Of a stretch of 64,000 bases of DNA, positions 7,691 to 62,600 are shown one piece after another. The notes under the pieces were generated by a model that was not told where the DNA came from, did no database searches, and saw only the letters and a program-made list of their open reading frames with translations. How positions within the stretch are numbered: the first letter of the stretch is position 1; every line of letters starts with the position of its first letter. The stretch comes from Cyanophora paradoxa CCMP329 (Eukaryota > Plantae > Glaucophyta), in NCBI GenBank assembly GCA_004431415.1, contig QPMI01000010.1:124001-188000 (forward strand), read 5' to 3'. Position numbers and translations under genes: made by a program.

Positions 7691-8222
7691 TACCACTACT
7701 TCCGGTCAAGTTGGTCGCTTTTCCGGCCACAGCTGCGCATGCAGCAGCCATGGCCAGCGGAAGGGCACGGAGGCTTGAGTTCGGCCGCGCGCGGCGGCCG
7801 CGCGCGGCCCGCTCCGGCGCGGCGGCCGCGGCCGGCTCCGGATCGACGCCGCCAGGGCTCCCGACCCGGCCGCGGGCGCGGCGAGCTCCGAGGCCAAATT
7901 AAAGTAGTAAGAGTGCCGCAGTGCTCGAGCTTAAGCTTCAGCTTAAGCTTCAACTCAGGCCGGCGCCGCGGCGGATTCCAATCCAGCATTCTAAGCTAAA
8001 TTAAATTAATCACATTCTGCTCACTATAAGACTGCACGCACATGTACAGTGCAATAACTTAATCCTACAATATGCAAATGCGCGCGCGAAGATCAAAGAA
8101 AGAAAAGCTGCAGGACTGCGAGATTGAGGATCGGACGGAAATGTATACTATGATACGTAAGAGTGGGCGAAATCCGATGATCGTAGTTGGGAGGGTCGAT
8201 CAAGAATCGGGCGATATCGATC

Positions 8223-40468: not shown

Positions 40469-42599
40469 CTACCTCCGCGTGCCCTTGCCCTTCGAGGCGG
40501 TGGTACGCCGCGCCGTGGCGCTCGCGGCGTTCGTGGCCGTCCCGAAGAGCCCGGGCGAGCCGGCCGCCGGGGTACCGAACGCGGGCGTCGAGGCCGCCCC
40601 GAACAGACCGCCCGTGGTCGAGGCGGGGGTACCGAAAGCCGGCGTCGAGGAGCCGAAGAGGCCCCCCGTGGCGGGCGGCGTCGACGCGGTACCCGTGGCG
40701 CCTCCGAAGAGGGAGGGGGTCGTGGAGCCGGCGGGGGTGCCGAAAAGGCCGCCGGTAGTGGTAGTCGGGGCGGGGGTAGAGGGGGTGGAGAGGCCGAAGA
40801 ACGATCCCGTGGGGGCGGGGGTGGTCGAGGTACCCCCCAGGGAGAAGGGGCTGGATGTGGGGGCTCCGAAGGGGCTGGCGGCGGGGGCGGCGGGGGTGGC
40901 GGCCGGCGGGTTCGCGCCGGGGAGGAGGGCCGCCGGCTGCGACGACCCGAAGCCTGCGCCGAAAGTCTGAGCGGGGCGTGGAGAGGTGCGGGAGGGTACA
41001 GCCGCACCGATGTAGAGGGGCTTCTTCGCAACAGCGGAGGGTAGGGGCGCGTCGAAGGGGTTCGGGGCGTCTGTACCCGCCAGCGCCATGTTCCGAAGGT
41101 ACCCCTCCTTCAGATCCTGTACCCGGTCGTGCACCTGGGCGACCTGGGGGCGGGGGAAGGGGCTCGGGCGGGGCAGGGGGCGGCGCGGGACGGGGGGGTG
41201 GAGGGCGTGGGGGGTACCTGAGCGGCAACCTTCACGAAGAGCTCGTGCTGGTTCTTCATGATGAGCTTGAGCGCTGCGCCGCGCGGCAGCGTCGGGCTCG
41301 CGCGCGAGGACGGCACGAAGCAAAGGCGGCGGGCGGCGGCGGCGGGCGGGCGGGCGGACCGTGGGGCGAGTGCGCGTGTCCTCCCGCCTTCGACGCGGCG
41401 ACGTGCCGCTCGAGCTCCTCTATTTGGAGGCGGATGAGCCGCATTCGCTCCCTGAAGCTCGCCTCCATCTCCCAGTAGTACCTGGCGCGACCGCGCGCGC
41501 CCGGTCGGTGCGCTGCGGGCGGCGGCGCCGGCGGCGGCAGCGGAGCAGGAGCAAGAGGAGGACGGGAGCGGATGCGCACTTGGATGGGAGGTACATGGGA
41601 GGTGCGGCGTAGGCGGCGGGGTTGGACTTGGCGTGGACGGTGCGGGCGGCCGTGTCGGCGTGGTCGATCACGCGGCGCGCTTCCTGCTTCAAGTCCAACA
41701 CAATCTTTCGCTCTCGTTCGATCCAGTTAAGCGCCGCACTCGCCGCCTGCAGGCGGCCTTCAGCGGCCGCGGCGGCGCCGCGGGGCGGGCGGCCGGGCGG
41801 GCGCTGGCCTGCGACAAGCTCTCGACCTGCTGCTTGATCTTGCTCAGCTCTTCGTTCTGTTTCTTCTCGCCCAGCTCCACGATAATCTGCTTCTGCTGTT
41901 TCCGGAAGGTCCTGAACAAGCGCGCGTCAGGCTAGGGCCCGAGCGGAGAAAGGAACGGGTGGCGCACTCAAACTCCTCGAGCTGCTTCTTGTAGTTCTCC
42001 GGCAGGTCCTGGGGAGAGCCGCGCGCTCAAGATACCTGCAGGGCGCGCGAGGCAAAAGGAGAGGCGCACGGCGAAGCGCATGGGGCCCCAGTTGACGGGC
42101 GCCGGCGCGGGGGCTGGCTGGCCCAGCTGCTGCTGCTGCTGCCCGAACAAGCCGAAGGAAGAGCCGCCCCCGAATGGGTTCGAAGTGTTCGCAGCGGTAG
42201 CGGCGGGCGTGGAGAATGAGAAAGTGGAAGTGGAAGGCGCCGCTGCTGGTGCCGCGGTGCCGAAGCTGAACGAGGACGTCGTGGTTGCGGGCTGCTGCGT
42301 TGCAGGGGTTGAGGAGAAGGAAAACGAAGGGGTGGATGTGGTCGTTGCAGCCGCGGGCGCCGACGAGGTGCCGCCGAAACTGAACGAGGACGTGGCTGTC
42401 GCCGCGGGCGCTGCAGGCGTCGAAGTTCCGAAGCTAAAGGAGCTCGCTGGCTGCGCCGGTGCCGGCGTGCTCGTTCCGAAGCTAAAGGAGGGGGTGCTCG
42501 CGGGCTGGCTCGCGGCCGGCGCGGCCGTGCCGAAGCTGCAGCGGCGCGGTTAGCATGCTTGAGGCGTTCTCTGCGCGAGCGGGCGCCGCACCTGAACAT
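40469..42599 (-). CDS. NUP58: Nucleoporin p58/p45 (FG repeats at both ends, central coiled coil)
   Basis: 8-nt first exon (ATG TTC AG), FSFG repeats, coiled-coil core with YLPSKYYWEMEASFRERMRLIRLQIEELERHV, IMKNQHELFVKVAAQVAQVHDRVQDLKEGYL and NPFD, then C-terminal GLFG repeats. Confidence 0.85.
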
Positions 42600-42728
42600 C
42601 GCGCGATCGACCGCTGCACCTCGCCCCCGAACGCGTACCCCGCAAACGGCGGGAACTCGCCGGGAAGTCAAAAACGTGGCTTGCGAGCGGGCGGCGGCAC
42701 CGGGAACGTCGAGACGCAGTAGCTGCAG
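42600..42728. promoter_or_regulatory. Putative bidirectional promoter (NUP58 / POLE3)
   Basis: 129 bp between divergent ATGs. Contains GGCGGGAA, which resembles an E2F site. Confidence 0.45.
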
Positions 42729-43488
42729 ATGGCCGACGACGAGGAGGAGCTGAAGCCGAAGGCGACAGGGAGCGCGCCAGACATCTCGGAGTATGAGCTG
42801 CCAAAGAGCGTGATCCTGCGCCTCATCAAGGACGCTACCGATGGGGATGTCAATGTGCGCTTCGCGCTGCGGCGCAAGTACTGGTCGCTGACCTCGCATC
42901 GCGCAGGTGGCCAAGGACGCCAAGTCGGCCTTCGCGAGGGCATGTAGGTGAGGCTGCGGCGAGCGCTGGCTATCTGTTAGCTGCGCAATGATCGCTGACG
43001 CGCCCCGCCCGCAGCGTCTTCATCCTGTACCTCACAGCAACGTCCGCGCCCCTGTGCAGCGAAGCCATCCGCTCCGCTTGCGCCGACGGCGCTTGTCTCG
43101 CAGAGCAAACGACATAGCAAAGGAGCGGGGCAAGAACCAGCTCTCGGCAGACCACGTCCTGGCGGCGCTGGACGAGCTAAACTTCCCCGACCTGCGGGAG
43201 CAGCTCAAGAGCTTCCTCGACAGTGCGCGCGCGCGCGCGCTGCGAATCCGCCGCCGATCTCGGAGCTCAGGCGCCGCCCCGCGCGCAGCGTTCCGGGAAG
43301 AGCAATCCGCGAAGAAGAAGGCAGCGAAGGAGCGGAAGCAGCAGGAGAAGGCCGCGGCGGGCGGCGGCGAGGAAAAGGCGGCGGAGGCCGAGGGCGAGGG
43401 CGGCGAGGGCGGCGAGGAGGACGGCGACGGCGACGCGGAGGCCGAGCATGCCTCGGGGGCGGAGGGAGGCGACGCGGACGACTCGTAG
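42729..43488 (+). CDS. POLE3: Histone-fold protein DNA polymerase epsilon subunit 3 / CHRAC17 / DPB4
   Basis: YELPKSVILRLIKDATDGDVNVAKDAKSAFARACSVFILYLTATANDIAKERGKNQLSADHVLAALDELNF, followed by a basic then acidic tail. Confidence 0.88.
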
Positions 43489-43635
43489 ATGGGGGTACAG
43501 CGACCGAGTCGACGTCGACACCGCACGCGAACCGATCACTGTTATGTATAGTAGGACAATAGCAACTACACCCCCTTCGCATAACGCTGACTAGACTAGG
43601 ATACATGCGCGTGCGCCTGCGTGTGGGGCGCGCCC

Positions 43636-46600
43636 TCACGGCCAGTCTGCGGCGAGCGCCGGGGCGTCAGCGGCCCGAGAGGGATGCATGCAGGGGGAGG
43701 GGAGCGGCGCCGCGCACAGAAGCCGGGCCCCGGCGTCTCCTCGCCGCCCTTTTCGACGCGCTTTGTGGCCATACTGAACGCCGGCCCGCTGGGGTCCGCG
43801 GGGGTACCGTACGCCCCCGGCCTGCCGTGACGTCACGACCATGCAGAGCATTTAAGAGACAAACAGGCGGAGCGTACCCCGGAGTGGGATCGGTCTGGCC
43901 CTCGGGATGGCGCCCCGTAATGCTGTACGCGACGCCGGGGTCCAGGGGCCAAAGGTACTGGCCGGGCCCTGGGCCGGTGTCGCCCGCGTTCGGGTCCGGC
44001 GAGCGGGCCCGGAGCGTGTACGAGGGGCCGCCCGGCGCCGCCGGCTGCCCGTACGCTCCCGGCCCCGGCACCACCTCCTTCGACGCCGGGTCGCCCGCCT
44101 TGCCCACGATCGTGTAGCTGGGCGTCGTCGGCCGCTCCTGCGGGTTGTACGCCCCTGCGCCCCCGCCGTCGGCCCTCCCGCGGCGGCGCTGGCGGCCCTG
44201 CGCCCCGCACCTGGCCCCGGCGACACGTCCGATGCGCCGCCATCCGCGTGCCGCGCCGCCATCGAGAACGCCGGCCCGCCCGGCGCCGCCGGCTGCCCGT
44301 ACGCTCCGGGCCCCGGCACCACCTCCTTCGACGCCGGTCGCCCGCCTTGCCCACGATCGTGTAGCTGGGCGTCGTCGGCCGCTCCTGCGGGTTGTACGCC
44401 CCTGCGCCCTGCCGTCGGCCCTCCCGTGGCGGCGCTGGCGGCCCTGCGCCCCGCACCTGGCCCGGCGACACGTCCGATGCGCCGCCATCCGCGTGCCGCG
44501 CCGCCATCGAGAACGCCGGCCCGCCCGGCGCCGCCGGCTGCCCGTACGCTCCGGGCCCGGCACGACCTCCTTCGACGCCGGGTCGCCCGCCTTGCCCACG
44601 ATCGTGTAGCTGGGCGTCGTCGGCCGCTCCTGCGGGTTATACGCCCCTGCGCCCCCGCCGTCGGCCCTCCCGCGGCGGCGCTGGCGGCCCTGCGCCCCGC
44701 ACCTGGCCCGGCGACACGTCCGATGCGCCGCCATCCGCGTGCCGCGCCGCCATCGAGAACGCCGGCCCGCCGGCGCCGCCGGCTGCCCGTACGCTCCGGG
44801 CCCCGGCACCACCTCCTTCGACGCCGGGTCGCCCGCCTTGCCCACGATCGTGTAGCTGGGCGTCGTCGGCCGCTCCTGCGGGTTATACGCCCTGCGCCCC
44901 GCCGTCGGCCCTCCCGCGGCGGCGCTGGCGGCCCTGCGCCCCGCACCTGGCCCCGGCGACACGTCCGATGCGCCGCCATCCGCGTGCCGCGCCGCCATCG
45001 AGAACGCCGGCCCGCCCGGCGCCGCCGGCTGCCCGTACGCTCCGGGCCCGGCACGACCTCCTTCGACGCCGGGTCGCCCGCCTTGCCCACGATCGTGTAG
45101 CTGGGCGTCGTCGGCCGCTCCTGCGGGTTGTACGCCCTGCGCCCTGCCGTCGGCCCTCCCGTGGCGGCGCTGGCGGCCCTGCGCCCGCACCTGGCCCCGG
45201 CGACACGTCCGATGCGCCGCCATCCGCGTGCCGCGCCGCCATCGAGAACGCCGGCCCGCCGGCGCCGCCGGCTGCCCGTACGCTCCCGGCCCCGGCACCA
45301 CCTCCTTCGACGCCGGGTCGCCCGCCTTGCCCACGATCGTGTAGCTGGGCGTCGTCGGCCGCTCCTGCGGGTTGTACGCCCTGCGCCCCGCCGTCGGCCC
45401 TCCGCGGCGGCGCTGGCGGCCCTGCGCCCGCACCTGGCCCCGGCGACACGTCCGATGCGCCGCCATCCGCGTGCCGCGCCGCCATCGAGAACGCCGGCCC
45501 GCCCGGCGCCGCCGGCTGCCCGTACGCTCCCGGCCCCGGCACCACCTCCTTCGACGCCGGGTCGCCCGCCTTGCCCACGATCGTGTAGCTGGGCGTCGTC
45601 GGCCGCTCCTGCGGGTTGTACGCCCCTGCGCCCCCGCCGTCGGCCCTCCCGCGGCGGCGCTGGCGGCCCTGCGCCCCGCACCTGGCCCCGGCGACACGTC
45701 CGATGCGCCGCCATCCGCGTGCCGCGCCGCCATCGAGAACGCCGGCCCGCCCGGCGCCGCCGGCTGCCCGTACGCTCCGGCCCCGGCACCACCTCCTTCG
45801 ACGCCGGGTCGCCCGCCTTGCCCACGATCGTGTAGCTGGGCGTCGTCGGCCGCTCCTGCGGGTTGTACGCCCCTGCGCCCCCGCCGTCGGCCCTCCCGCG
45901 GCGGCGCTGGCGGCCCTGCGCCCCGCACCTGGCCCCGGCGACACGTCCGATGCGCCGCCATCCGCGTGCCGCGCCGCCATCGAGAACGCCGGCCCGCCCG
46001 GCGCCGCCGGCTGCCCGTACGCTCCGGGCCCCGGCACGACCTCCTTCGACGCCGGGTCGCCCGCCTTGCCCACGATCGTGTAGCTGGGCGTCGTCGGCCG
46101 CTCCTGCGGGTTGTACGCCCCTGCGCCCCTGCCGTCGGCCCTCCCGTGGCGGCGCTGGCGGCCCTGCGCCCCGCACCTGGCCCGGCGACACGTCCGATGC
46201 GCCGCCATCCGCGTGCCGCGCCGCCATCGAGAACGCCGGCCCGCCCGGCGCCGCCGGCTGCCCGTACGCTCCGGGCCCCGGCACCACCTCCTTCGACGCC
46301 GGGTCGCCCGCCTTGCCCACGATCGTGTAGCTGGGCGTCGTCGGCCGCTCCTGCGGGTTGTACGCCCCTGCGCCCCTGCCGTCGGCCCTCCCGTGGCGGC
46401 GCTGGCGGCCCTGCGCCCCGCACCTGGCCCCGGCGACACGTCCGATGCGCCGCCATCCGCGTGCCGCGCCGCCATCGAGAACGCCGGCCCGCCCGGCGCC
46501 GCCGGCTGCCCGTACGCTCCGGGCCCGGCACGACCTCCTTCGACGCCGGGTCGCCCGCCTTGCCCACGATCGTGTAGCTGGGCGTCGTCGGCCGCTCCTG

Positions 46601-49600
46601 CGGGTTGTACGCCCCTGCGCCCCTGCCGTCGGCCCTCCCGTGGCGGCGCTGGCGGCCCTGCGCCCCGCACCTGGCCCCGGCGACACGTCCGATGCGCCGC
46701 CATCCGCGTGCCGCGCCGCCATCGAGAACGCCGGCCCGCCCGGCGCCGCCGGCTGCCCGTACGCTCCGGGCCCGGCACCACCTCCTTCGACGCCGGGTCG
46801 CCCGCCTTGCCCACGATCGTGTAGCTGGGCGTCGTCGGCCGCTCCTGCGGGTTGTACGCCCCTGCGCCCCTGCCGTCGGCCCTCCCGTGGCGGCGCTGGC
46901 GGCCCTGCGCCCCGCACCTGGCCCCGGCGACACGTCCGATGCGCCGCCATCCGCGTGCCGCGCCGCCATCGAGAACGCCGGCCCGCCCGGCGCCGCCGGC
47001 TGCCCGTACGCTCCGGGCCCCGGCACCACCTCCTTCGACGCCGGGTCGCCCGCCTTGCCCACGATCGTGTAGCTGGGCGTCGTCGGCCGCTCCTGCGGGT
47101 TGTACGCCCCTGCGCCCCTGCCGTCGGCCCTCCCGTGGCGGCGCTGGCGGCCCTGCGCCCCGCACCTGGCCCCGGCGACACGTCCGATGCGCCGCCATCC
47201 GCGTGCCGCGCCGCCATCGAGAACGCCGGCCCGCCGGCGCCGCCGGCTGCCCGTACGCTCCCGGCCCGGCACCACCTCCTTCGACGCCGGGTCGCCCGCC
47301 TTGCCCACGATCGTGTAGCTGGGCGTCGTCGGCCGCTCCTGCGGGTTGTACGCCCCTGCGCCCCCGCCGTCGGCCCTCCCGCGGCGGCGCTGGCGGCCCT
47401 GCGCCCCGCACCTGGCCCCGGCGACACGTCCGATGCGCCGCCATCCGCGTGCCGCGCCGCCATCGAGAACGCCGGCCCGCCCGGCGCCGCCGGCTGCCCG
47501 TACGCTCCCGGCCCCGGCACCACCTCCTTCGACGCCGGGTCGCCCGCCTTGCCCACGATCGTGTAGCTGGGCGTCGTCGGCCGCTCCTGCGGGTTGTACG
47601 CCCCTGCGCCCCTGCCGTCGGCCCTCCCGTGGCGGCGCTGGCGGCCCTGCGCCCCGCACCTGGCCCCGGCGACACGTCCGATGCGCCGCCATCCGCGTGC
47701 CGCGCCGCCATCGAGAACGCCGGCCCGCCCGGCGCCGCCGGCTGCCCGTACGCTCCGGGCCCCGGCACCACCTCCTTCGACGCCGGGTCGCCCGCCTTGC
47801 CCACGATCGTGTAGCTGGGCGTCGTCGGCCGCTCCTGCGGGTTGTACGCCCCTGCGCCCCTGCCGTCGGCCCTCCCGTGGCGGCGCTGGCGGCCCTGCGC
47901 CCCGCACCTGGCCCCGGCGACACGTCCGATGCGCCGCCATCCGCGTGCCGCGCCGCCATCGAGAACGCCGGCCCGCCCGGCGCCGCCGGCTGCCCGTACG
48001 CTCCGGGCCCCGGCACCACCTCCTTCGACGCCGGGTCGCCCGCCTTGCCCACGATCGTGTAGCTGGGCGTCGTCGGCCGCTCCTGCGGGTTGTACGCCCC
48101 TGCGCCCCGCCGTCGGCCCTCCCGCGGCGGCGCTGGCGGCCCTGCGCCCGCACCTGGCCCCGGCGACACGTCCGATGCGCCGCCATCCGCGTGCCGCGCC
48201 GCCATCGAGAACGCCGGCCCGCCCGGCGCCGCCGGCTGCCCGTACGCTCCCGGCCCCGGCACCACCTCCTTCGACGCCGGGTCGCCCGCCTTGCCCACGA
48301 TCGTGTAGCTGGGCGTCGTCGGCCGCTCCTGCGGGTTGTACGCCCCTGCACCCCCGCCGTCGGCCCTCCCGCGGCGGCGCTGGCGGCCCTGCGCCCGCAC
48401 CTGGCCCGGCGACACGTCCGATGCGCCGCCATCCGCGTGCCGCGCCGCCATCGAGAACGCCGGCCCGCCCGGCGCCGCCGGCTGCCCGTACGCTCCGGGC
48501 CCGGCACCACCTCCTTCGACGCCGGGTCGCCCGCCTTGCCACGATCGTGTAGCTGGGCGTCGTCGGCCGCTCCTGCGGGTTGTACGCCCCTGCGCCCCCG
48601 CCGTCGGCCCTCCTCGGCGGCGCTGGCGGCCCTGCGCCCGCACCTGGCCCCGGCGACACGTCCGATGCGCCGCCATCCGCGTGCCGCGCCGCCATCGAGA
48701 ACGCCGGCCCGCCCGGCGCCGCCGGCTGCCCGTACGCTCCCGGCCCGGCACGACCTCCTTCGACGCCGGGTCGCCCGCCTTGCCCACGATCGTGTAGCTG
48801 GGCGTCGTCGGCCGCTCCTGCGGGTTGTACGCCCCTGCGCCCCCGCCGTCGGCCCTCCCGCGGCGGCGCTGGCGGCCCTGCGCCCCGCACCTGGCCCCGG
48901 CGACACGTCCGATGCGCCGCCATCCGCGTGCCGCGCCGCCATCGAGTACGCCGGCCCGCCCGGCGCCGCCGGCTGCCCGTACGCTCCGGGCCCCGGCACC
49001 ACCTCCTTCGACGCCGGGTCGCCCGCCTTGCCCACGATCGTGTAGCTGGGCGTCGTCGGCCGCTCCTGCGGGTTGTACGCCCCTGCGCCCCCGCCGTCGG
49101 CCCTCCCGCGGCGGCGCTGGCGGCCCTGCGCCCCGCACCTGGCCCCGGCGACACGTCCGATGCGCCGCCATCTGCGTGCCGCGCCGCCATCGAGAACGCC
49201 GGCCCGCCCGGCGCCGCCGGCTGCCCGTACGCTCCGGGCCCCGGCACGACCTCCTTCGACGCCGGATCGCCCGCCTTGCCCACGATCGTGTAGCTGGGCG
49301 TCGTCGGCCGCTCCTGCGGGTTGTACGCCCCTGCGCCCCCGCCGTCGGCCCTCCCGCGGCGGCGCTGGCGGCCCTGCGCCCCGCACCTGGCCCCGGCGAC
49401 ACGTCCGATGCGCCGCCATCCGCATGCCGCGCCGCCATCGAGAACGCCGGCCCGCCCGGCGCCGCCGGCTGCCCGTACGCTCCGGGCCCCGGCACGACCT
49501 CCTTCGACGCCGGGTCGCCCGCCTTGCCCACGAGAGTGAACGCCGGAGCCCCGCTCTTGTCGTTCGGGTTGTACGCCCCTGCGCCCAGCCGCGTCAACGG

Positions 49601-52600
49601 AAATCCTCGACAGCTCTTTTCTCGCCCAAGCCACGTACCCGGCCCAGGCGACAGATCCGTCGACCCCGTGTCGACGTATCGCGCCGCCATCGAGTACGCC
49701 GGCCCGCCCGGCGCCGCCGGCTGCCCGTACGCTCCGGGCCCCGGCACGACCTCCTTCGACGCCGGGTCGCCCGCCTTGCCCACGAGAGTGAACGCCGGAG
49801 CCCCGCTCTTGTCGTTCGGGTTGTACGCCCCTGCGCCCAGCCGCGTCAACGGAAATCCCCAACAGCTCTCTACCCGCCGCAGCCACGTACCCGGCCCAGG
49901 CGACAGATCCGTCGACCCCGTGTCGACGTATCGCGCCGCCATCGAGTACGCGGGCCCGCCCGGCGCCGCCGGCTGCCCGTACGCTCCGGGCCCCGGCACG
50001 ACCTCCTTCGACGCCGGGTCGCCCGCCTTGCCCACGAGGGTGAACGCCGGAGCCCCGCTCTTGTCGTTCGGGTTGTACGCCCCTGCGCCCAGCCGCGTCA
50101 ACGGAAATCCCCAACAGCTCTCTACCCGCCGCAGCTGCGTACCCGGCCCAGGCGACAGATCCGTCGACCCCGTGTCGACGTACCGCGCCGCCATCGAGTA
50201 CGCCGGCCCGCCCGGTGCCGCCGGCTGCCCGTACGCTCCGGGCCCCGGCACGACCTCCTTCGACGCCGGGTCGCCCGCCTTGCCCACGAGAGTGAACGCC
50301 GGAGCCCCGCTCTTGTCGTTCGGGTTGTACGCCCCTGCGCCCAGCCGCGTCAACGGAATTGCCCAACCGCTCTTTCCCCGCCGCAGCTGCGCACCCGGCC
50401 CAGGCGACAGATCCGTCGACCCCGTGTCGACGTATCGCGCCGCCATCGAGTACGCCGGCCCGCCCGGCGCCGCCGGCTGCCCGTACGCTCCGGGCCCCGG
50501 CACGACCTCCTTCGACGCCGGGTCGCCCGCCTTGCCCACGAGAGTGAACGCCGGAGCCCCGCTCTTGTCGTTCGGGTTGTACGCCCCTGCGCCCAGCCGC
50601 GTCAACGGAATTGTCCAACAGCTCTCTCCCCGCCGCAGCCGCGTACCCGGCCCAGGCGACAGATCCGTCGACCCCGTGTCGACGTATCGCGCCGCCATCG
50701 AGTACGCCGGCCCGCCCGGCGCCGCCGGCTGCCCGTACGCCCCCGGCCCTGGCACGACCTCCTTCGACGCCGGGTCGCCCGCCTTGCCCACGAGAGTGAA
50801 CGCCGGAGCCCCGCTCTTGTCGTTCGGGTTGTACGCCCCTGCGCCCAGCCGCGTCAACGGAAATCCCCAACAGCTCTTTTCCCGCCGCAGCTGCGTACCC
50901 GGCCCAGGCGACAGATCCGTCGACCCCGTGTCGACGTATCGCGCCGCCATCGAGTACGCCGGCCCGCCAGGCGCCGCCGGCTGCCCGTACGCTCCGGGCC
51001 CCGGCACGACCTCCTTCGACGCCGGGTCGCCCGCCTTGCCCACGAGAGTGAACGCCGGAGCCCCGCTCTTGTCATTCGGGTTGTACGCCCCTGCGCCCAG
51101 CCGCGTCAACGGAAATCCCCAACAGCTCTCTCCCCGCCGCAGCTGCGTACCCGGCCCAGGCGACAGATCCGTCGACCCCGTGTCGACGTATCGCGCCGCC
51201 ATCGAGTACGCCGGCCCGCCCGGCGCCGCCGGCTGCCCGTACGCCCCCGGCCCTGGCACGACCTCCTTCGACGCCGGGTCGCCCGCCTTGCCCACGAGAG
51301 TGAACGCCGGAGCCCCGCTCTTGTCGTTCGGGTTGTACGCCCCTGCGCCCAGCCGCGTCAACGGAAATCCTCGACAGCTCTCTCCCCGCCGCAGCTGCGT
51401 ACCCGGCCCAGGCGACAGATCCGTCGACCCCGTGTCGACGTATCGCGCCGCCATCGAGTACGCCGGCCCGCCAGGCGCGGCTGGCTGCCCGTACGCTCCG
51501 GGCCCCGGCACGACCTCCTTCGACGCCGGGTCGCCCGCCTTGCCCACAAGTGTGTAGGCCGGAGTCCCTGGCCTCTGGACGGGGTTGTACGCCCCTGCGC
51601 CCAGCCGCGTTAACGGACTTGCCCAACCGCTCTTTCCCCGCCGCAGCCGCGTACCCGGCCCAGGCGACAGATCCGTCGACCCCGTGTCGACGTATCGCGC
51701 CGCCATCGAGTACGCCGGCCCGCCCGGCGCCGCCGGCTGCCCGTACGCCCCCGGCCCTGGCACGACCTCCTTCGACGCCGGGTCGCCCGCCTTGCCCACG
51801 AGAGTGAACGCCGGAGCCCCGCTCTTGTCGTTCGGGTTGTACGCCCCTGCGCCCAGCCGCGTCAACGGAAATCCTCGACAGCTCTTTTCCCGCCGCAGCT
51901 GCGTACCCGGCCCAGGCGACAGATCCGTCGACCCCGTGTCGACGTATCGCGCCGCCATCGAGTACGCCGGCCCGCCAGGCGCCGCCGGCTGCCCGTACGC
52001 TCCGGGCCCCGGCACGACCTCCTTCGACGCCGGGTCGCCCGCCTTGCCCACGAGAGTGAACGCCGGAGCCCCGCTCTTGTCGTTCGGGTTGTACGCCCCT
52101 GCGCCCAGCCGCGTCAACGGAAATCCCCAACAGCTCTCTCCCCGCCGCAGCCACGTACCCGGCCCAGGCGACAGATCCGTCGACCCCGTGTCGACGTATC
52201 GCGCCGCCATCGAGTACGCCGGCCCGCCCGGCGCCGCCGGCTGCCCGTACGCCCCCGGCCCCGGCACGACCTCCTTCGACGCCGGGTCGCCCGCCTTGCC
52301 CACGAGAGTGAACGCCGGAGCCCCGCTCTTGTCGTTCGGGTTGTACGCCCCTGCGCCCAGCCGCGTCAACGGAAATCCTCGACAGCTCTCTACCCGCCGC
52401 AGCTGCGTACCCGGCCCAGGCGACAGATCCGTCGACCCCGTGTCGACGTATCGCGCCGCCATCGAGTACGCCGGCCCGCCAGGCGCGGCTGGCTGCCCGT
52501 ACGCTCCGGGCCCCGGCACGACCTCCTTCGACGCCGGGTCGCCCGCCTTGCCCACGAGAGTGAACGCCGGAGCCCCGCTCTTGTCGTTCGGGTTGTACGC

Positions 52601-55600
52601 CCCTGCGCCCAGCCGCGTCAACGGAAATCCTCGACAGCTCTCTACCCGCCGCAGCTGCGTACCCGGCCCAGGCGACAGATCCGTCGACCCCGTGTCGACG
52701 TATCGCGCCGCCATCGAGTACGCCGGCCCGCCCGGCGCCGCCGGCTGCCCGTACGCCCCCGGCCCCGGCACGACCTCCTTCGACGCCGGGTCGCCCGCCT
52801 TGCCCACGAGAGTGAACGCCGGAGCCCCGCTCTTGTCATTCGGGTTGTACGCCCCTGCGCCCAGCCGCGTCAACGGAAATCCCCAACAGCTCTCTCCCCG
52901 CCGCAGCTGCGTACCCGGCCCAGGCGACAGATCCGTCGACCCCGTGTCGACGTATCGCGCCGCCATCGAGTACGCCGGCCCGCCCGGCGCCGCCGGCTGC
53001 CCGTACGCCCCCGGCCCTGGCACGACCTCCTTCGACGCCGGGTCGCCCGCCTTGCCCACGAGAGTGAACGCCGGAGCCCCGCTCTTGTCGTTCGGGTTGT
53101 ACGCCCCTGCGCCCAGCCGCGTCAACGCAAATCCTCGACAGCTCTCTCCCCGCCGCAGCTGCGTACCCGGCCCAGGCGACAGATCCGTCGACCCCGTGTC
53201 GACGTATCGCGCCGCCATCGAGTACGCCGGCCCGCCAGGCGGCGCCGGCTGCCCGTACGCTCCGGGCCCCGGCACGACCTCCTTCGACGCCGGGTCGCCC
53301 GCCTTGCCCACAAGTGTGTAGGCCGGAGTCCCTGGCCTCTGGACGGGGTTGTACGCCCCTGCGCCCAGCCGCGTTAACGGACTTGCCCAACCGCTCTTTC
53401 CCCGCCGCAGCCGCGTACCCGGCCCAGGCGACAGATCCGTCGACCCCGTGTCGACGTATCGCGCCGCCATCGAGTACGCCGGCCCGCCAGGCGCCGCCGG
53501 CTGCCCGTACGCCCCCGGCCCTGGCACGACCTCCTTCGACGCCGGGTCGCCCGCCTTGCCCACGAGAGTGAATGCCGGAGCCCCGCTCTTGTCGTTCGGG
53601 TTGTACGCCCCTGCGCCCAGCCGCGTCAACGGAAATCCTCGACAGCTCTCTCCCCGCCGCAGCTGCGTACCCGGCCCAGGCGACAGATCCGTCGACCCCG
53701 TGTCGACGTATCGCGCCGCCATCGAGTACGCCGGCCCGCCCGGCGCCGCCGGCTGCCCGTACGCCCCCGGCCCCGGCACGACCTCCTTCGACGCCGGGTC
53801 GCCCGCCTTGCCCACGAGAGTGAACGCCGGAGCCCCGCTCTTGTCGTTCGGGTTGTACGCCCCTGCGCCCAGCCGCGTCAACGGAAATCCCCAACAGCTC
53901 TCTCCCCGCCGCAGCTGCGTACCCGGCCCAGGCGACAGATCCGTCGACCCCGTGTCGACGTATCGCGCCGCCATCGAGTACGCCGGCCCGCCCGGCGCCG
54001 CCGGCTGCCCGTACGCCCCCGGCCCTGGCACGACCTCCTTCGACGCCGGGTCGCCCGCCTTGCCCACGAGAGTGAACGCCGGAGCCCCGCTCTTGTCGTT
54101 CGGGTTGTACGCCCCTGCGCCCAGCCGCGTCAACGGAAATCCTCGACAGCTCTCTCCCCGCCGCAGCTGCGTACCCGGCCCAGGCGACAGATCCGTCGAC
54201 CCCGTGTCGACGTATCGCGCCGCCATCGAGTACGCCGGCCCGCCCGGCGCCGCCGGCTGCCCGTACGCTCCGGGCCCCGGCACGACCTCCTTCGACGCCG
54301 GGTCGCCCGCCTTGCCCACGAGAGTGAACGCCGGAGCCCCGCTCTTGTCGTTCGGGTTGTACGCCCCTGCGCCCAGCCGCGTCAACGGAAATCCCCAACA
54401 GCTCTCTCCCCGCCGCAGCCACGTACCCGGCCCAGGCGACAGATCCGTCGACCCGTGTCGACGTATCGCGCCGCCATCGAGTACGCGGGCCCGCCCGGCG
54501 CCGCCGGCTGCCCGTACGCCCCGGCCCCGGCACGACCTCCTTCGACGCCGGGTCGCCCGCCTTGCCCACGAGAGTGAACGCCGGAGCCCCGCTCTTGTCG
54601 TTCGGGTTGTACGCCCCTGCGCCCAGCCGCGTCAACGGAAATCCTCGACAGCTCTCTACCCGCCGCAGCTGCGTACCCGGCCCAGGCGACAGATCCGTCG
54701 ACCCCGTGTCGACGTATCGCGCCGCCATCGAGTACGCCGGCCCGCCAGGCGCGGCTGGCTGCCCGTACGCTCCGGGCCCCGGCACGACCTCCTTCGACGC
54801 CGGGTCGCCCGCCTTGCCCACGAGAGTGAACGCCGGAGCCCCGCTCTTGTCGTTCGGGTTGTACGCCCCTGCGCCCAGCCGCGTCAACGGAATTGTCCAA
54901 CAGCTCTCTCTCCGCCGCAGCCACGTACCCGGCCCAGGCGACAGATCCGTCGACCCCGTGTCGACGTATCGCGCCGCCATCGAGTACGCCGGCCCGCCAG
55001 GCGCCGCCGGCTGCCCGTACGCTCCGGGCCCCGGCACGACCTCCTTCGACGCCGGGTCGCCCGCCTTGCCCACGAGAGTGAACGCCGGAGCCCCGCTCTT
55101 GTCGTTCGGGTTGTACGCCCCTGCGGCCCATCGTTAGACCGCCATTCAACCCCCCGTCGATGCCAGCGCGCGCTGACCTGGCCCTGGTCCCGTGTCGCTG
55201 GCGCCTGGGTCGGCCGTCCTGTGCGCCATGCTGAACGCGGGCCCGGGCGACGGCGCTCCGACCGCGTATGCGCCGGGGCCCGGCACGACCTCCTTCGACG
55301 CTGGGTCCGGCGCCTTTCCGAGCAGAGTGTACGCGGGCGTGCCGGGCCTCTCGAGCGGGTTGTACGCCCCTGCGGCCCATCGTTAGACTGCGATTCAATC
55401 CTCCGTCGATGCCAGCTCGCGCTGACCTGGCCCTGGTCCAGTGTCGCTGGCGCCTGTGTCAGCCGTCCTGTGCGCCATGCTGAACGCGGGCCCGGGCGAC
55501 GGCGCTCCGACCGCGTATGCGCCGGGGCCCGGCACGACCTCCTTCGACGCTGGGTCCGGCGCCTTTCCGAGCAGAGTGTACGCGGGCGTGCCGGGCCTCT

Positions 55601-58600
55601 CGAGCGGGTTGTACGCCCCTGCGGCCCATCGTTAGACTGCGATTCAATCCTCCGTCGATGCCAGCTCGCGCTGACCTGGCCCTGGTCCCGTGTCGCTGGC
55701 GCCTGGGTCGGCCGTCCTGTGCGCCATGCTGAACGCGGGCCCGGGCGACGGCGCTCCGACCGCGTATGCGCCGGGGCCCGGCACGACCTCCTTCGACGCT
55801 GGGTCCGGCGCCTTTCCGAGCAGAGTGTACGCGGGCGTGCCGGGCCTCTCGAGCGGGTTGTACGCCCCTGCGGCCCATCGTTAGACTGCGATTCAACCCT
55901 CCGTCGATGCCAGCGCGCGCTGACCTGGCCCTGGTCCCGTGTCGCTGGCGCCTGGGTCGGCCGTCCTGTGCGCCATGCTGAACGCGGGCCCGGGCGACGG
56001 CGCTCCGACCGCGTATGCGCCGGGGCCCGGTACGACCTCCTTCGACGCCGGGTCGCCCGCCTTGCCCACGAGAGTGAACGCCGGAGCCCCGCTCTTGTCG
56101 TTCGGGTTGTACGCCCCTGCGGCGTCGGCGTAGCCGCTTTCGACGACGCGCAGCAAAAGCGGGGCACGCGAGAAGCCGGCCCGTACCTGGCCCTGGCCCC
56201 GGCTCCTGCGCCCCTTGCACCGGAGACTTCCCGCGCATCGTGTAAGCTGGCGTGTCCGGCCCCATTCGCGTGTCGTAGGCCCCTGCACGCTGTGAGGGCG
56301 AGCTCTGACGCCAGCGCCTGCGGGAGCTGTGGGGTACCTGGCCCGGGGGACGCGTCTGCGGAGGCGGCGGCGGGGTCGGAGTGCCTCCCGATGAGCGTGA
56401 AGGCAGGTACGCGGGGCGCCGGCGCCGGCCTGCGCGCGCGCGCAAGTCAGACCGCGCGGCGCGGCGCGGCGCGGCGGTAGGCGGCTCGCAGAGCGGAACG
56501 CACGCGTATGCGCCGGGGCCCGGGCCCGTGTCGGTACCCCCCGGGTGCGCGGTCTTCGGGCGCATGCTGAACGCCGGGCCGCCGGCGCGGACGCCCTCCG
56601 AATTGTACGCGCCTGCGGCGGAGAGGGGGCTTGGGAGCGCCCGGGCGGATCGGCGAGGCCTGCAGAGCCGGCCCCCCGCACCTGGTCCGGGCGAGGTGTC
56701 GGCTGGGGCCGACTTGGCCGACGTAGGCCGCCGCCCGATCAGCGAGAAGGCGGGGGTAGACCCGGGGCGCGCCGGCGTGTACGCCCCTGCGCGCGCGCCC
56801 GTCAGCCGACGGCGAGGCGGGCCGGACCCGAAGTGGCGTGCGCATGCACCCGGGCCCGGGCCTCCGTCCATCGAGGCGCGGAGAGAGGCCGGCCGGCCGC
56901 CGCCCATGCTGAAAGCTGGGCCGCTGGAGCCGCCCGGCGCGTAGGCGCCCGGCCCCGGCCCCTCGTCCGAGCCCGCGCTGCGGTATGTGCGCCCCACGAG
57001 CGAGTACGCCGGCGACTGCGGGCGGCTCTTCGAGTCGTAGGAGCCGGGACCAGGGCTGACGGCCGGGGGTACAGTCGGAGATCGAATGGGAAGAGAAGCG
57101 AAGGGGTACGCACCCATAGTAGACGGTCGAGCCGGCCGAGTCGGGGCGGTACCCCCGGCGGCGGGCCATGGAGTACATGGGGCCACCCAGCGGGAGGCGA
57201 AGATCGTACGCTCCTGGGGGTACGGCATTACGGCGTGACGGACGAGAACGGCCCCGCGGGGATTCGAACCCGGGCCGGGCGTGGTCCCGTCGCGGTCGCC
57301 GCCGGCGCCGCCGGTCCGGCCCTGCAGGCTGAAGCCCTTCTTCGGAGAGCCCGCCGCCGCAGGGTTGTACGCGCCTGCCGAGAAGAGATCAGTCCCTCGG
57401 GGGTACGCGGCGCCGGCGGGGGTACTGCGGCACCGGGACCAGGGCCGCCGTCCTCCTGTTCGATTCGGCCGTTGGCGGACTGGGGGCGGTTGCGGATCGT
57501 GTACGAGGGCCCCCCTACCCCCCCGTTGGGCCTGCGCGAAGGCACCTCAGGAGAGATCCTCTGCAGGGAGGGGGTACGTGCGCAAACGCACCCGTAGGCC
57601 CCCGGGCCCGGATCGCCGTCCTCCTGGGAGCCCTGGGGGTACTTCCCCGGCATGCTCCAGGCCGGTGCCGCTTCCTGCCGGACTCTTGTTAGCTCTGTCA
57701 AGCTTTAATAGCGCTTCTTGTTATGAGCTTATTAGCTTATTAGCTTGTTGAAGAGCGGACCTTATCAGGGAACAGGTTCTTGCGGGGCTCGGGGGCCGCC
57801 GCCCCGCGCCGCGCCCCAGCGCTCGCCGACTGCGGCCGGCGGGCCGGCCCGCCCGTGCCGGCGCCCGGGCCGGCCTGCCGCGCCGCGCGTGGCGGGTTGT
57901 ACTCCTTTCGCCCGTCCGAGGCCCCGCGGTTCGCGATGGGGCCCGGCCTGCCCGACCGGAACGACCCGCCCCGGCTCGCTCGCGCCCGCGGGGAGGAAGG
58001 GTGGGGAAGGGCGGGCAAGGACGCACCGGTCGCGCCCGGGGATTCGCCCCCGCTCCCGCCCCGCCGCTGGGGTCGCCTGCGCCGCCGCCGGCGGCGGCGA
58101 CGCGGCGCGCGGCGGCCCCGACGCGCGCTTGCGCCACGGCGTCTGCCGCCTCTGGCCCGTACTCCACTGCGAAGGAGGTAGCCCGCGATCGATCAGAAAA
58201 GGGGGAGGTACGACGGAGCGAGAGGGAGGCCCGCGCACCCGATGTGACGGCCGCGACCGCGACGACGGGCCGGCCCGCTCCCGCGCCCGAAGCTGCGGGC
58301 GAGCCGCGCCGCCGCGTCGCCCTGCGGCGCCCGCCCGCCGTAGAGCCGCTGCAGCTCCTGCTTGAGGCGGCCCACGGCAGACGCCGAAGACCCGGCGGAG
58401 GAGGACGAGGAGACGGAGGCCGTGTCCGAGAAGCGGCGGCCGGCCGCCGAGGGCGGCCGCGGGCCCGCCGCGTGGCCGGGCGCCCCTCCCCCTCCTCCCC
58501 CGCCCTTGGCAGCCTCCAGGGTCTTCATGAGGCGGGCCTTGAGGCCCGGCGGCGAGGCGAGCTGCGCCCGCGCGTGCGCGAAGCCCGCCGCGGCGAGCTC

Positions 58601-59400
58601 GGCGAACACGGCCTGCGCGTGGAATGAGCGACCGGGGGGTACGCGAAGCAACGCGGGGCGCGCCGCGGCGTTGGGGTCCGCCTCGGTGCGGCAGACGGTG
58701 GAGCCTGAGCCGGCGTAGGACGGGGCGTTGGAGGAGCGGCCCGAGGCGCTGGAGCGCGCGTCCTCTCCCTCGTCCTCCTCGGCCGGACCCGAGGCGAGCC
58801 GCTCGTCGAGGAGGGCGGCCGCGGCGCCGGCGGCCTGGGCGAGCCCGCGGTCGGCGGCCGGCGAGGGCGGGAAGCTGTACTCCACCGCGTGCATGCGCGA
58901 CCCGCGCTGGAAGGCGCGCCTGCGCGGGGCGGGCGGGTTGGGTGGCGCTGGCGGGCGGGCGGGCGCGGCGGCGGACCAGAGGTCGATGTGGCGGAGCTCG
59001 CGACCCTGTATCACCCGCGCGCGGACGCCGGTCCACGACGGGAACCACGAGGTGACCGAGTCCTGCGGGCGCCTTGAGCGGCCGGCGCTCGGAATTCGCA
59101 CCGCGGGGCTGCGCTCGGAGGCACCTTGAAGTAGGGGTCGCAGGCGACGATGCGCACGCGGGAGCGGAGAGGCTGCTGGTCGTTGAGCGCCTTGATCCCC
59201 TCGGTCGCCGCCGTGAGCACCACGCGCGAGGCCGGGCCGGTGCAGACGCCGGAGAAAGTCTGCGCCGGGTGGCCCGGCCTGGAGAGGATCGCCGTCCAGG
59301 CTCCCACGCCCGCTCCAGCATCGCTCGAGCACACGCCAGCGACGTGGATCACCGCGAGAGGCAGCGTGGCTGAGCCCGAGCCTGCAGGCTGGTCCGCCAT
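43636..59400 (-). CDS. Giant SHIPPO-repeat (ODF3/STPG-like, PGPGxY) protein, roughly 4000 aa, with an apparent N-terminal inactive RNase H domain
   Basis: About 110 repeats of 32 aa with pattern PGPGAY...PA[FY][ST][MLI]. Last exon ends ...TPGPGFYWP-stop at 43636. ATG at 59400 begins an RNase HI-like domain. The linker splice path at about 57950-58350 is ambiguous. Confidence 0.8.
43963..49530 (-). repeat. Tandem block A: 22 units of about 248 bp (192-nt exon + 56-nt GT-AG intron)
   Basis: Period 244-248 bp. First intron at 44155-44210 (GTGCGG...GCGCAG on the minus strand). Exon peptide GAYNPQERPTTPSYTIVG...SDVSPGP. Confidence 0.95.
49531..55120 (-). repeat. Tandem block B: 22 units of 252 bp (192-nt exon + 60-nt in-frame GT-AG intron)
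   Basis: Exact 252-bp period over most of the block. Intron e.g. 49579-49638 with TTGAC branch site. Exon peptide GAYNPNDKSGAPAFTLVG...TDLSPGP. Confidence 0.95.
55121..56116 (-). repeat. Tandem block C: 4 units of 249 bp (192-nt exon + 57-nt stop-containing intron)
   Basis: Introns GTCAGC...CTAAC...CCGCAG starting at 55121, 55370, 55619 and 55868. Exon peptide GAYNPLERPGTPAYTLLG...SDTGPGP. Confidence 0.93.
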
Positions 59401-59670
59401 CGTGGCGGCGGGCCCAGGCGGCTCTCCCAATGCACTCAGACACTAGGATGCGCGGTGCTCAGTTCAGAACCGGTCAGAGATCCCTCCAGCGGGGTCCAGC
59501 GCCTCAGCTCCGGGCCACGCGCTCACTAAGCGAGGCCGTCCAGCGAGCAGCTGATCTCGTGCCACCTGCTTCCAGAAAAAGATTGCACCAGGGCCGTCTG
59601 TCGGGTTGAGCAGGCCACGACTTGAGCCTCTGTACCCGTCCTTGCAAAGAAAAAAAGCACCGGCCTAGCG

Positions 59671-62600
59671 ATGGCGGACAGCGACGACGAAGGAGCGGAG
59701 CAGGTAGCGGCACAGGCGAACAAGGAGCGGATCTTCTATGGCTCCATCGAACTTCAGGAGCGGCAACGAAGACAGGAGGCGAGCGTCCACGCGAGCTTCC
59801 CGCGCGCTTCGACGCATCCGCGGGACGCGTTCGTTGACTGGCGGGCGCGACGCAGGCCGCTGGTGGAGGGGGCGATGGCGAGGGCGTGTCGCCCCCGCCG
59901 GCCGCCTTCGACCAGCAGATGGCCGCAGCGAGGGCAGCGGGCAACATCAACTACGCCCCCGCAGGTCCGATGGCGCGATGCCGCGGCCGTCCCTCCCGCG
60001 GCCGACCGACCGCGCTTCTCTCTCAGAGGCCGAGACCATGGAGCTTGACTTGAAGAGCCAGGCGAGCATAGAGAAGCACAAGATGCTCATGGACCAGCTG
60101 GATCAGCAGAAGCGCGCGCGATCGCTGTACGTGCCTACGAACGACGCGGAAGTGCGGAAGCGGCTGCGGGAGCTAGAAGAGCCGATGACGCTCTTCGGAG
60201 AGGGGGTGCGACCGCCCGCCGAGCCCCGCTCGCACGCAGCGGCTGACGCGGCGGCAGCCCGGGGAGCGGAGAGACCGTCTCAAGGCCATTCTTGTCCGGA
60301 TGCACCCGGAGGCGGCCGCGCAGATCACGGGGGCGGTCGGCATCGCGCCGCCGCCGCCCGGCAAGGGCCGCGCGCAGGAGATTGAACCCAAAGAGCCCAC
60401 CGTGAGCGCCGGCCCGGGCGCCCGCCCGCCCGCCCGCTGCCGCCCCGCCCACCGCCCCGCCCTCAGAAGGTCGAGCTTTTCTACACGCCCGGCACGGAGG
60501 ATCTCAAGCGCGCGCGTGTGGAGATTGCGAACTGGTCCCTGCCTCGGTACCCTCCCCTCCTTCCCCCCCCCCCCTCGCCCTCCCCCTCCCCTTCCCCCCC
60601 GCTCTGCTCAGCGCGGATCGCAGCGCGCAGAAGCGGATCGTCAAGCGGCGGAAAGAGCTGGAGACCCCGGGGTACTACGTGGAGGAGAAGGAGCGCTACA
60701 CGCAGCTGCACGCCCAGCTCAAGGTGCGTCCGTCGGCCCCGTACCCCCCTTTCTCCTGGACCCAAGGCTGACTGGGCGGGCCCGGCCCCGCGCAGCACAT
60801 GTCGAACATATCCAGCCAGATCGGGGACGACCGTGCGCTCCCTCTACGCTCCCGCTCACTCCCTCTGCCCCTCTCACTCTCTTTCTTCGCAGGCCCGCTC
60901 TCCTGCTGCGCCCTCTCGCCGGACGACCGCCTCGTCCTCACGGGCTCCTGGTCCACACTCATCAAGGTGCGGGGGGGGCGGGGCTAGGCGCCTGGGGCGA
61001 GGCCAGCCAGAGGGGGCACGGGTCCGGGCGTCCGTCCAGGCCACGGGGTGGAGGGGCTAGAGGGGACGCCCGCCGCCCGCCCGTCTCCAGGGGGGGGGTT
61101 ACTCTCCGCTCTCCCGCCGCCCTTCTTCTCACCTTAGAACCGCCTCGCCTAGCTCCCTTCTTCTTCTTCTTCTCACCTAGCGCTGCGCTGCGCTGCGCTC
61201 GCCTGCCGCCGTCGCCCTTCTCCTTCTACTCACCTTGGACCCGCCTCGCCCCGCCCCGCCCCGCCCCGCCCAGGTATGGGACCGTGACACGGTGGAGCGG
61301 AAGGCGACCTTCAAGGGTACGCGCGGCGACCCTCTCCCTCGCCCCCTCTCTCTTTCGCCTCTGACTCTCTTTCCTTCCGCCTCCCCACAGGCCACAAGGA
61401 GCGCGTGATCGACGTCGCCTGGCACCCCTCGGCCTCCTCCTCCTCCATAGAAGCCGACCCGGCCGCTATGATGGACACGGGGGAGGGCGCCCCCTCCACG
61501 GTGGCCTTCGCCTCGTCCTCGGCGGACGGAACGGCTCGACTCTGGAGCCTGGGCAAGACCACGGACATCGGGGTCCTCGAGGGCCACGCCGACCGCCTCG
61601 GCTCGCTGGGCTTCCACCCCTCCGGCCGCTTCCTCGCCACCGCCAGGCGCGCTTGTACCCCGCCCTTCTTTCCTCCCCCCCTCCCTCTCAGCTTCTTCTT
61701 CTTCGTTCGCAGCTTCGACAAGACGTGGCGCCTGTGGGACGTGGAGACGCGGAAGGAGCTGCTGCTCCAGGAGGGACACTCCCGCGCCGTCTACGGCATC
61801 GCCTTCCACCCGGACGGATCCCTCGCCGCCTCCAGGTTGCTCCTGTTCTCCTGTACCCCTCTTGGGTCCGGCGCCCCGAGGGCTCAGCGGCGCCGCGCCC
61901 CGCAGCGGCCTGGACTCGATCGTCCGATGCTGGGACCTCCGCACGGGCAAGTCCGTCCTGACTCTCGAGGCGCGTACCCCCCCGTTCCGCGCCTGTACCC
62001 TTCCTCGCCCGGCCCGAGCCGTCGGTCGCGCAGGGCCACGTCAAGCAGGTCATCTCTGTCGACTTCAACCCGATGGGGTACCCCCTCGGCCTTCCCCCCC
62101 CCCGCCGCTGCAAGCTCGCCCCCGACGCGACGCGTACCCCCCCGCAGGTGGTTGCTGGCCAGCGCCTCGGATGACCACACCGTACGCATCTGGGACCTCC
62201 GCAAGCAGGTGCCGCCTGTACCCCCCGCTGCCGCACCCTGTACCCCGGCTGACGTTCGGGGGTACGCAGAAAGCGAAGTACACGATCGCGGCGCACACGG
62301 CCCTCATCTCGAAGGTCAAGTTCCAGGTTCGGGTCCCCGCGGCCGCCCTTTCCGCGCCCCGGCTAGCTAAGGGCCCGCCCGCCCAGCCCGAGCACGGCCA
62401 GTACCTCGCGTCCTCCTCCTACGACGGGACCGTGAAGACCTGGTACCCTTCTTTCTTCCCCCCTCCTCCTCCCGGCCCCGCCCGGCCCGAGGTCCTTCCG
62501 CAGGGCGCCCGATCACCTTTACGACAATTGGACCCTCCTCCGGACCCTGGCCGGGCACGAAGGGAAGGCGCGTACCCCCCCCCCCGCTCTCTGCCCGCTT

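Follow-up and report, generated by a model that had tools for sequence, protein, structure and literature searches.

A tandem exon array in Cyanophora paradoxa that probably encodes a very long protein of the SHIPPO family

In proteins of the ODF3/CIMAP1/STPG family, also known as SHIPPO or PG-rich repeat proteins, successive tubulins in the outer wedge of doublet microtubules are bound by PGPGxY motifs, the spacers of about 40 amino acids (aa) corresponding to steps of 8 nm, and ODF3L proteins with 12 motifs may span 96 nm (Kubo 2023, PMC10105768). SHIPPO proteins of Giardia localise to the disc, the axonemes and the median body (10.1101/361105). ODF3 and STPG members are 250–360 aa long and contain 5–12 motifs, about 40 aa apart in Tetrahymena. 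Here, we describe a gene of this type in a 64,000-nt stretch of the glaucophyte Cyanophora paradoxa CCMP329 (contig QPMI01000010.1, positions 124,001–188,000; hereafter, the window, to which all coordinates refer). It differs from these members in having 110 motifs, 32 aa apart within the array, and in the homogenisation of its exon+intron array; it also has a head that is probably RNase H-like. An earlier note on this locus (the original prediction) had described a titin-like array gene and invoked the 8-nm tubulin repeat, the latter in agreement with the published structures (Kubo 2023, PMC10105768). We consider it likely that the locus is an intact spliced gene for a very long family member, which would act as a multivalent stabiliser of the microtubule surface.

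Tandem Repeats Finder flagged a tandem array at about 44.0–56.1 kb of the window. On the minus strand, 49 matching array acceptors define 48 exon+intron units and a longer last exon, with units arranged in blocks of 4 × 249, 22 × 252 and 22 × 248 bp. The array is flanked by nine unique exons upstream and three downstream, and the frame is kept over every junction. In the direction of transcription, the features of the repeat region are as follows, with their basis in brackets:
56117–57674, minus strand: nine unique exons, which together encode ten divergent SHIPPO repeats spaced 32–37 aa apart (sequence)
55121–56116, minus strand: block A, 4 units of a 192-nt exon and a 57-nt intron with in-frame stops (sequence)
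49579–55120, minus strand: block B, 22 units of a 192-nt exon and a 60-nt intron, in frame and stop-free (sequence and RNA-type contigs)
44155–49578, minus strand: block C, 22 units of a 192-nt exon and a 56-nt intron (sequence and RNA-type contigs)
43878–44154, minus strand: unit 49, a 277-nt exon leaving the array, with unique repeats (Atlas matches all SHIPPO)
43636–43821, minus strand: last two exons (43821–43718 and 43646–43636), with the final motif and the stop (sequence only)

Each 192-nt exon encodes two 32-aa repeats. As originally predicted, the array introns are in phase 1 throughout and split the same codon, that of the second Gly of the motif (PGP-G/AY); they have GT-AG ends, and six introns among the unique 5' exons lie at this same PGPG codon. 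The three intron types (56, 60 and 57 nt) aligned no better than shuffled sequences (p 0.07–0.22), consistent with the claim that they are unrelated, and an Rfam search of 40–64 kb gave no match. From the exon beginning at 57674 to the stop codon (TGA, 43638–43636), there are 110 PG-x-G-x-Y motifs (10 + 96 + 4), and this repeat region would encode 3,533 aa (about 340 kDa), assuming full-length exons. The predicted 49 units and approximately 110 repeats were thus recovered, with their coordinates, but the 32-aa spacing holds only within the array, the unique repeats being 30–37 aa apart.

Part of the stretch is present in twenty public sequencing runs, each available in the form of assembled contigs, the depths of which were not taken as copy numbers. 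Fourteen DNA-type runs contained 0.59–0.64 of the sampled words, a share near the value of 0.68 to be expected when rare words are dropped and both unique and multi-copy ones retained. The contigs of four runs were compared over the 435-nt B/C junction, which holds one copy of each part. The 56-nt C intron (49331–49386) was skipped exactly in two RNA-type runs of separate studies, X15 and X17, and the 60-nt B intron (49579–49638) was skipped in X15; both joints have GT-AG ends, and at the junction the B intron is free of RNA contigs. In X17, a contig of 222 nt joins one C exon to the next in a loop. The contigs of the DNA runs cover both introns, and the two C-intron haplotypes (9 and 13 assembly copies) were both found in DNA run X1. 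In all four runs, DNA and RNA, the unique sequence of unit 49 appeared as a loose-end continuation of the contigs. The array gene is therefore transcribed and spliced at the B and C introns, with its exons in tandem order in the RNA. Because the length of the block B intron is divisible by three and none of its 22 copies contains a stop, the sequence by itself could not prove it to be an intron; the RNA-type contigs did. A reading of block B as an unspliced 84-aa repeat is ruled out, because the intron is skipped in these contigs and varies neutrally. Contig loose ends at 49341–49347 and 49456 come from other loci of the organism; the one at 49456 in X15, with a PGPG-type motif on the minus strand, may belong to a second SHIPPO gene.

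The original prediction described the exons as 192 nt long with scattered losses of 1 nt. The length was confirmed, but 13 of the 48 array exons are short by 1–3 nt, 12 of these in block C, and the spliced frame as assembled stops at residue 1168. All exon deletions are of single bases in G/C runs of 3–5, the deletion rate per run is similar in C exons and C introns, and the contigs at the B/C junction carry no indel. The probable source assembly used PacBio RSII reads, Canu, Quiver and short-read majority correction (PMC6704402), and with such a procedure these errors would be expected to stay in repeats. We consider it very probable that the short exons reflect errors in the long-read consensus, which short reads were unable to correct within the repeat. 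The full-length exons of block B carry 12 synonymous and 0 non-synonymous variants, and those of block C 4 and 1, giving a total of 16 : 1 (p ~1e-8 if the variants are counted as independent), whereas the B intron read as code has 3 synonymous and 16 non-synonymous variants, a neutral ratio. The exons are thus under purifying selection. Furthermore, 43 of the 48 units are distinct, and exact repeats extend over 465 nt at most. Simple assembly stutter is unlikely, because the units differ and their variants recur in an independent run. The gene is real, expressed and probably intact.

For the family assignment, exons were searched singly, and joined translations served only for counts of length, motifs and stops. 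A profile of seven exons matched ODF3 and CIMAP1A/B in the PDB at E-values of 7e-11 to 2.5e-6 (ODF3, 7e-11; CIMAP1B, 1e-7; entries 8snb, 8otz and 8iyj) and STPG1A weakly, and 30 of 30 matches in an Atlas search were SHIPPO clusters (Atlas features 0.96). As in ODF3/CIMAP1A-B and STPG1A/ODF3L, PGPGxY is preceded by a P-[AS]-[YF]-[ST] segment. The tandem motifs, 110 in number, are 30–37 aa apart, in keeping with an 8-nm spacing and with the family, in which the median is 34 aa. Judged from these comparisons, the gene is a member of the ODF3/CIMAP1/STPG family, as originally proposed. No Ig or FN3 domain was matched in the exons in Pfam or the PDB. A single-sequence AlphaFold model of the repeats, made without an alignment, was unfolded (pLDDT 42) and uninformative.

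The profile search matched 1,390 representatives among 1.84 billion sequences. The best 150 of these 1,390 included nine proteins with 34–49 motifs and 1,200–2,400 aa, the long matches listed being from Trypanosoma brucei (2,395 aa, XP_846340), T. congolense (2,067), Diplonema (1,849), Diphylleia (1,770), Hexamita (1,424) and Stentor (1,208), and long members also occurred in Trichomonas, Volvox, Chlamydomonas eustigma, Tetraselmis and Ginkgo. Ginkgo biloba, a seed plant with flagellated sperm, has SHIPPO proteins of 1,182 and 589 aa. The family was originally said to be usually a few hundred aa in size, but long members are common, reaching 49 motifs and 2,395 aa in the matches listed. They recur in flagellated eukaryotes, with the array described here as the extreme. 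Relatives in the matches listed have at most 49 motifs, versus 110 here, so this array of PG-rich microtubule-binding repeats is, within the reach of a single profile, the longest found, with more than twice the motifs of its longest relative. No profile match exceeded about 48% identity to any exon, indicating that the array is not represented among the matched proteins, and no orthologue was found. The protein libraries searched do not contain its protein, probably owing to the resemblance of the array to satellite DNA. Searches for homologues by indexed words, made with a B exon, also gave no match; since one of them failed to detect the long T. brucei protein, such negatives are of little weight as regards relatives.

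The protist proteins compared (XP_846340, Diplonema, Hexamita CAL6101793, Trichomonas XP_001581839.2, Stentor OMJ68979, Volvox and Monosiga XP_001749603) have the same repeat family, with 13–49 motifs and 740–2,400 aa in the matches listed. Those from Hexamita, Trichomonas and Monosiga display recent internal duplications, like the array described here, and in the first two of these the homogenised repeats are of a higher order. However, the gene in Hexamita is no longer than its coding sequence, and the introns of the Monosiga gene do not occur once in every unit, both unlike this locus. Our literature searches identified no study of SHIPPO proteins of 1,400–2,400 aa, including XP_846340. The search therefore reveals a broad, apparently unstudied class of SHIPPO proteins of 1,000–2,400 aa in flagellated eukaryotes, including T. 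brucei, in which their function would be easy to test. Within the family, spacings of 31–34 aa account for 59% of 1,556, and only 7 are below 30 aa, a sharp lower limit that fits the 8-nm step. The 32-aa unit thus lies within the usual range, and the fixed exon length, originally taken as a sign of selection on spacing, is better explained by ordinary constraint and recent homogenisation.

The array itself suggests how it arose. B and C exons are near-identical at nt 49–134 and differ in their heads and tails. Units 1, 12, 19 and 27 are mosaics: the B head is combined with an A tail in unit 1 and with a C tail in unit 27, and a fourth type of head is found in units 12 and 19. Variant patterns recur at lags of 4, 7, 9 and 11 units. 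We infer from the mosaics and lags that unequal crossover occurred mid-exon, copying tail, intron and head together. An ancestral gene of some 15–20 repeats may have grown by repeated crossover of this kind in the shared exon middle, which would yield same-phase introns and equal exon lengths without selection for skipping. The array exons are indeed symmetric (phase 1-1), as noted originally, but this does not point to exon skipping, since in-frame tandem duplication must leave such symmetry. The length of the array was probably either tolerated or favoured in bulk, with no fixed number of repeats as a target.

The gene was first thought to begin at 57676, but this site is an acceptor, and a GT-AG chain without stops runs from an ATG at 59400 into the exon at 57674, which would add 483 aa upstream of the repeat region. 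Internal splice sites of this chain are not unique, and the chain is in phase with exon 57674. Its candidate features are:
59125–59400, minus strand: probable first exon, RNase HI-like (weak PDB match, open splice chain)
57761–59062, minus strand: probable further head exons (59062–58977, 58919–58239 and 58166–57761) encoding a low-complexity linker (one possible GT-AG chain)
57675–57760, minus strand: 86-nt intron (43% GC, CTAAC branch-like site) joining the head to the repeats in phase 0 (from the nucleotide sequence alone)

The first head exon had no Pfam match and weakly matched the RNase H 1ril in the PDB (E 0.027). In this weak alignment, which stops before the later catalytic residues, the first two acidic catalytic positions of RNase HI, an Asp and a Glu, are replaced (DG to AG and MEL to VVL). 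The open chain makes it probable that the head and the repeat region belong to one gene, with a protein of probably about 4,000 aa. Two separate genes are the less probable arrangement, though one with a substantial minority chance, because the repeat region has an ATG of its own near 57653 and reading on into the 86-nt intron soon meets a stop. The U4/U6 snRNP PRP4 gene (about 59670–62400, plus strand) starts about 270 bp from the ATG at 59400 and is transcribed in the opposite direction; the two genes therefore likely share a promoter, which supports 59400 as the gene start. The intron at 57675–57760 is AT-rich, with AAGCT-type short repeats resembling the tandem repeats at 7928, 21336 and 24263–24439, and it may contain a small inserted element. 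At the other end, a spliced histone-fold-like gene (42729–43490, plus strand; DPB4/POLE3/NC2-type by eye) is convergent with the array gene, their stops being about 150 bp apart, and is followed by an FG-repeat nucleoporin-like gene (about 41500–42600, minus strand), recognised by eye from PSFSFG-type repeats and then a coiled-coil-like part.

By analogy with the structures from Tetrahymena and sperm, the array protein would bind the outer microtubule surface as an unfolded chain lying in the groove between two protofilaments. Each PGPGxY would dock one tubulin dimer further along (32 aa for every 8 nm, or 0.25 nm per residue), and about 110 weak sites would add up to a very tight grip, stabilising a long-lived microtubule, such as a flagellar doublet, a root or a cortical array, with the head as a possible anchor. 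The 110 motifs would span about 0.88 µm if all bind one groove in a row. With one motif per tubulin dimer, it becomes testable whether repeat number sets a length on microtubules or only adds grip. We doubt the former, proposed originally as a molecular ruler or cable, in which a head-anchored chain measures about 0.9 µm and exon skipping or copy number tunes the length. The span (110 × 8 nm) does fit within the contour length of the chain, motif spacing is never below 30 aa, every array exon is in phase 1-1, the distinct head could serve as an anchor, and a 96-nm span has been raised for 12-motif ODF3L proteins (Kubo 2023, PMC10105768). However, the spacing equals the family norm, the near-identical repeats have no positional code, the mosaic units suggest an unstable number and the symmetric phase is a by-product of duplication. 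No exon skipping was seen in the contigs, which are collapsed and, with near-identical exons, would hide it. Nebulin is a precedent on actin, but its own ruler role is disputed (PMC7109182). A bolder version, in which a chain of about 4,000 aa, anchored by a dead RNase H head, lies for about 0.9 µm in one groove and determines how long a flagellar, root or cortical structure becomes, tuned by skipping or unit number (a nebulin for microtubules), strikes us as slightly more doubtful still.

The chain might instead lace microtubules together, its stretches binding neighbouring ones in root bands, the multilayered structure or the cortical array. It appears flexible and rich in Gly, Pro and Ala, unfolded in the prediction, and Giardia SHIPPO proteins on the disc and median body, besides axonemes, and the repetitive cortical microtubule-associated protein (MAP) MARP-1 of trypanosomes would be in line with such cross-linking. 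Nevertheless, the spacing of 30–37 aa leaves no long spacer anywhere, and the solved family members keep to one groove, so that we regard this role as improbable. It seems equally improbable that the locus is partly broken or mis-sized, with real deletions in block C or over-counted units and a product of far fewer than 110 repeats. The broken frame in 13 exons and the recurrence of some deletions at the same site in up to seven units would fit such a locus, as would the fact that the number of units is that of the assembly. However, the deletions are confined to homopolymer runs, as expected of the likely source assembly (PMC6704402), the full-length exons contain no nonsense change, the C exon is full length in RNA contigs and the units carry their own diagnostic variants.

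The preferred reading, an intact gene for a long surface stabiliser, has several observations to contend with besides the unit count. It relies on assembled contigs, and the RNA status of X15 and X17 is an automated guess, though the splice joints support it. A substitution carried by ten B units was not listed from the contigs; contigs drop variants, so the lack of deletions in them is weak evidence. An X1 contig at 49428–49511 has four differences, including a base at 49481 found in no assembled unit, which may reflect a strain difference, a collapsed copy or a paralogue. Single exons scored at best 18.8 bits against the Pfam SHIPPO-rpt family (PF07004; cut-off 20), with four of 14 pieces matching; a block A exon gave E 0.0034, below the cut-off. 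Finally, the solved family structures have 5–12 motifs, and the behaviour of 110 is an extrapolation from them.

Titin consists of folded Ig and FN3 domains and has an elastic function. Like the array gene, it is a giant modular gene with duplicated exons, but its domains were not matched in the array protein, and the label titin-like is a poor one because the array repeats appear to be unfolded and lattice-binding. Nebulin is a giant chain of 35–40 aa repeats, one per filament subunit, that extends over about 1 µm and has been proposed as a ruler, and its duplicated exon blocks, which vary in copy number, recall the exon-block duplication described here (PMC7109182). The resemblance is one of analogy: nebulin is an actin-binding protein without homology to the array protein, its repeats are grouped into super-repeats of seven, and its splice isoforms have been demonstrated. 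MARP-1 of T. brucei is a high molecular weight MAP with tandem microtubule-binding repeats of 38 aa (PMC2289396), similar in length to the array repeats; its repeat, judged unrelated by description only, is not organised in exon+intron units. Nebulin and MARP-1 thus appear to be better analogies than titin for the array protein.

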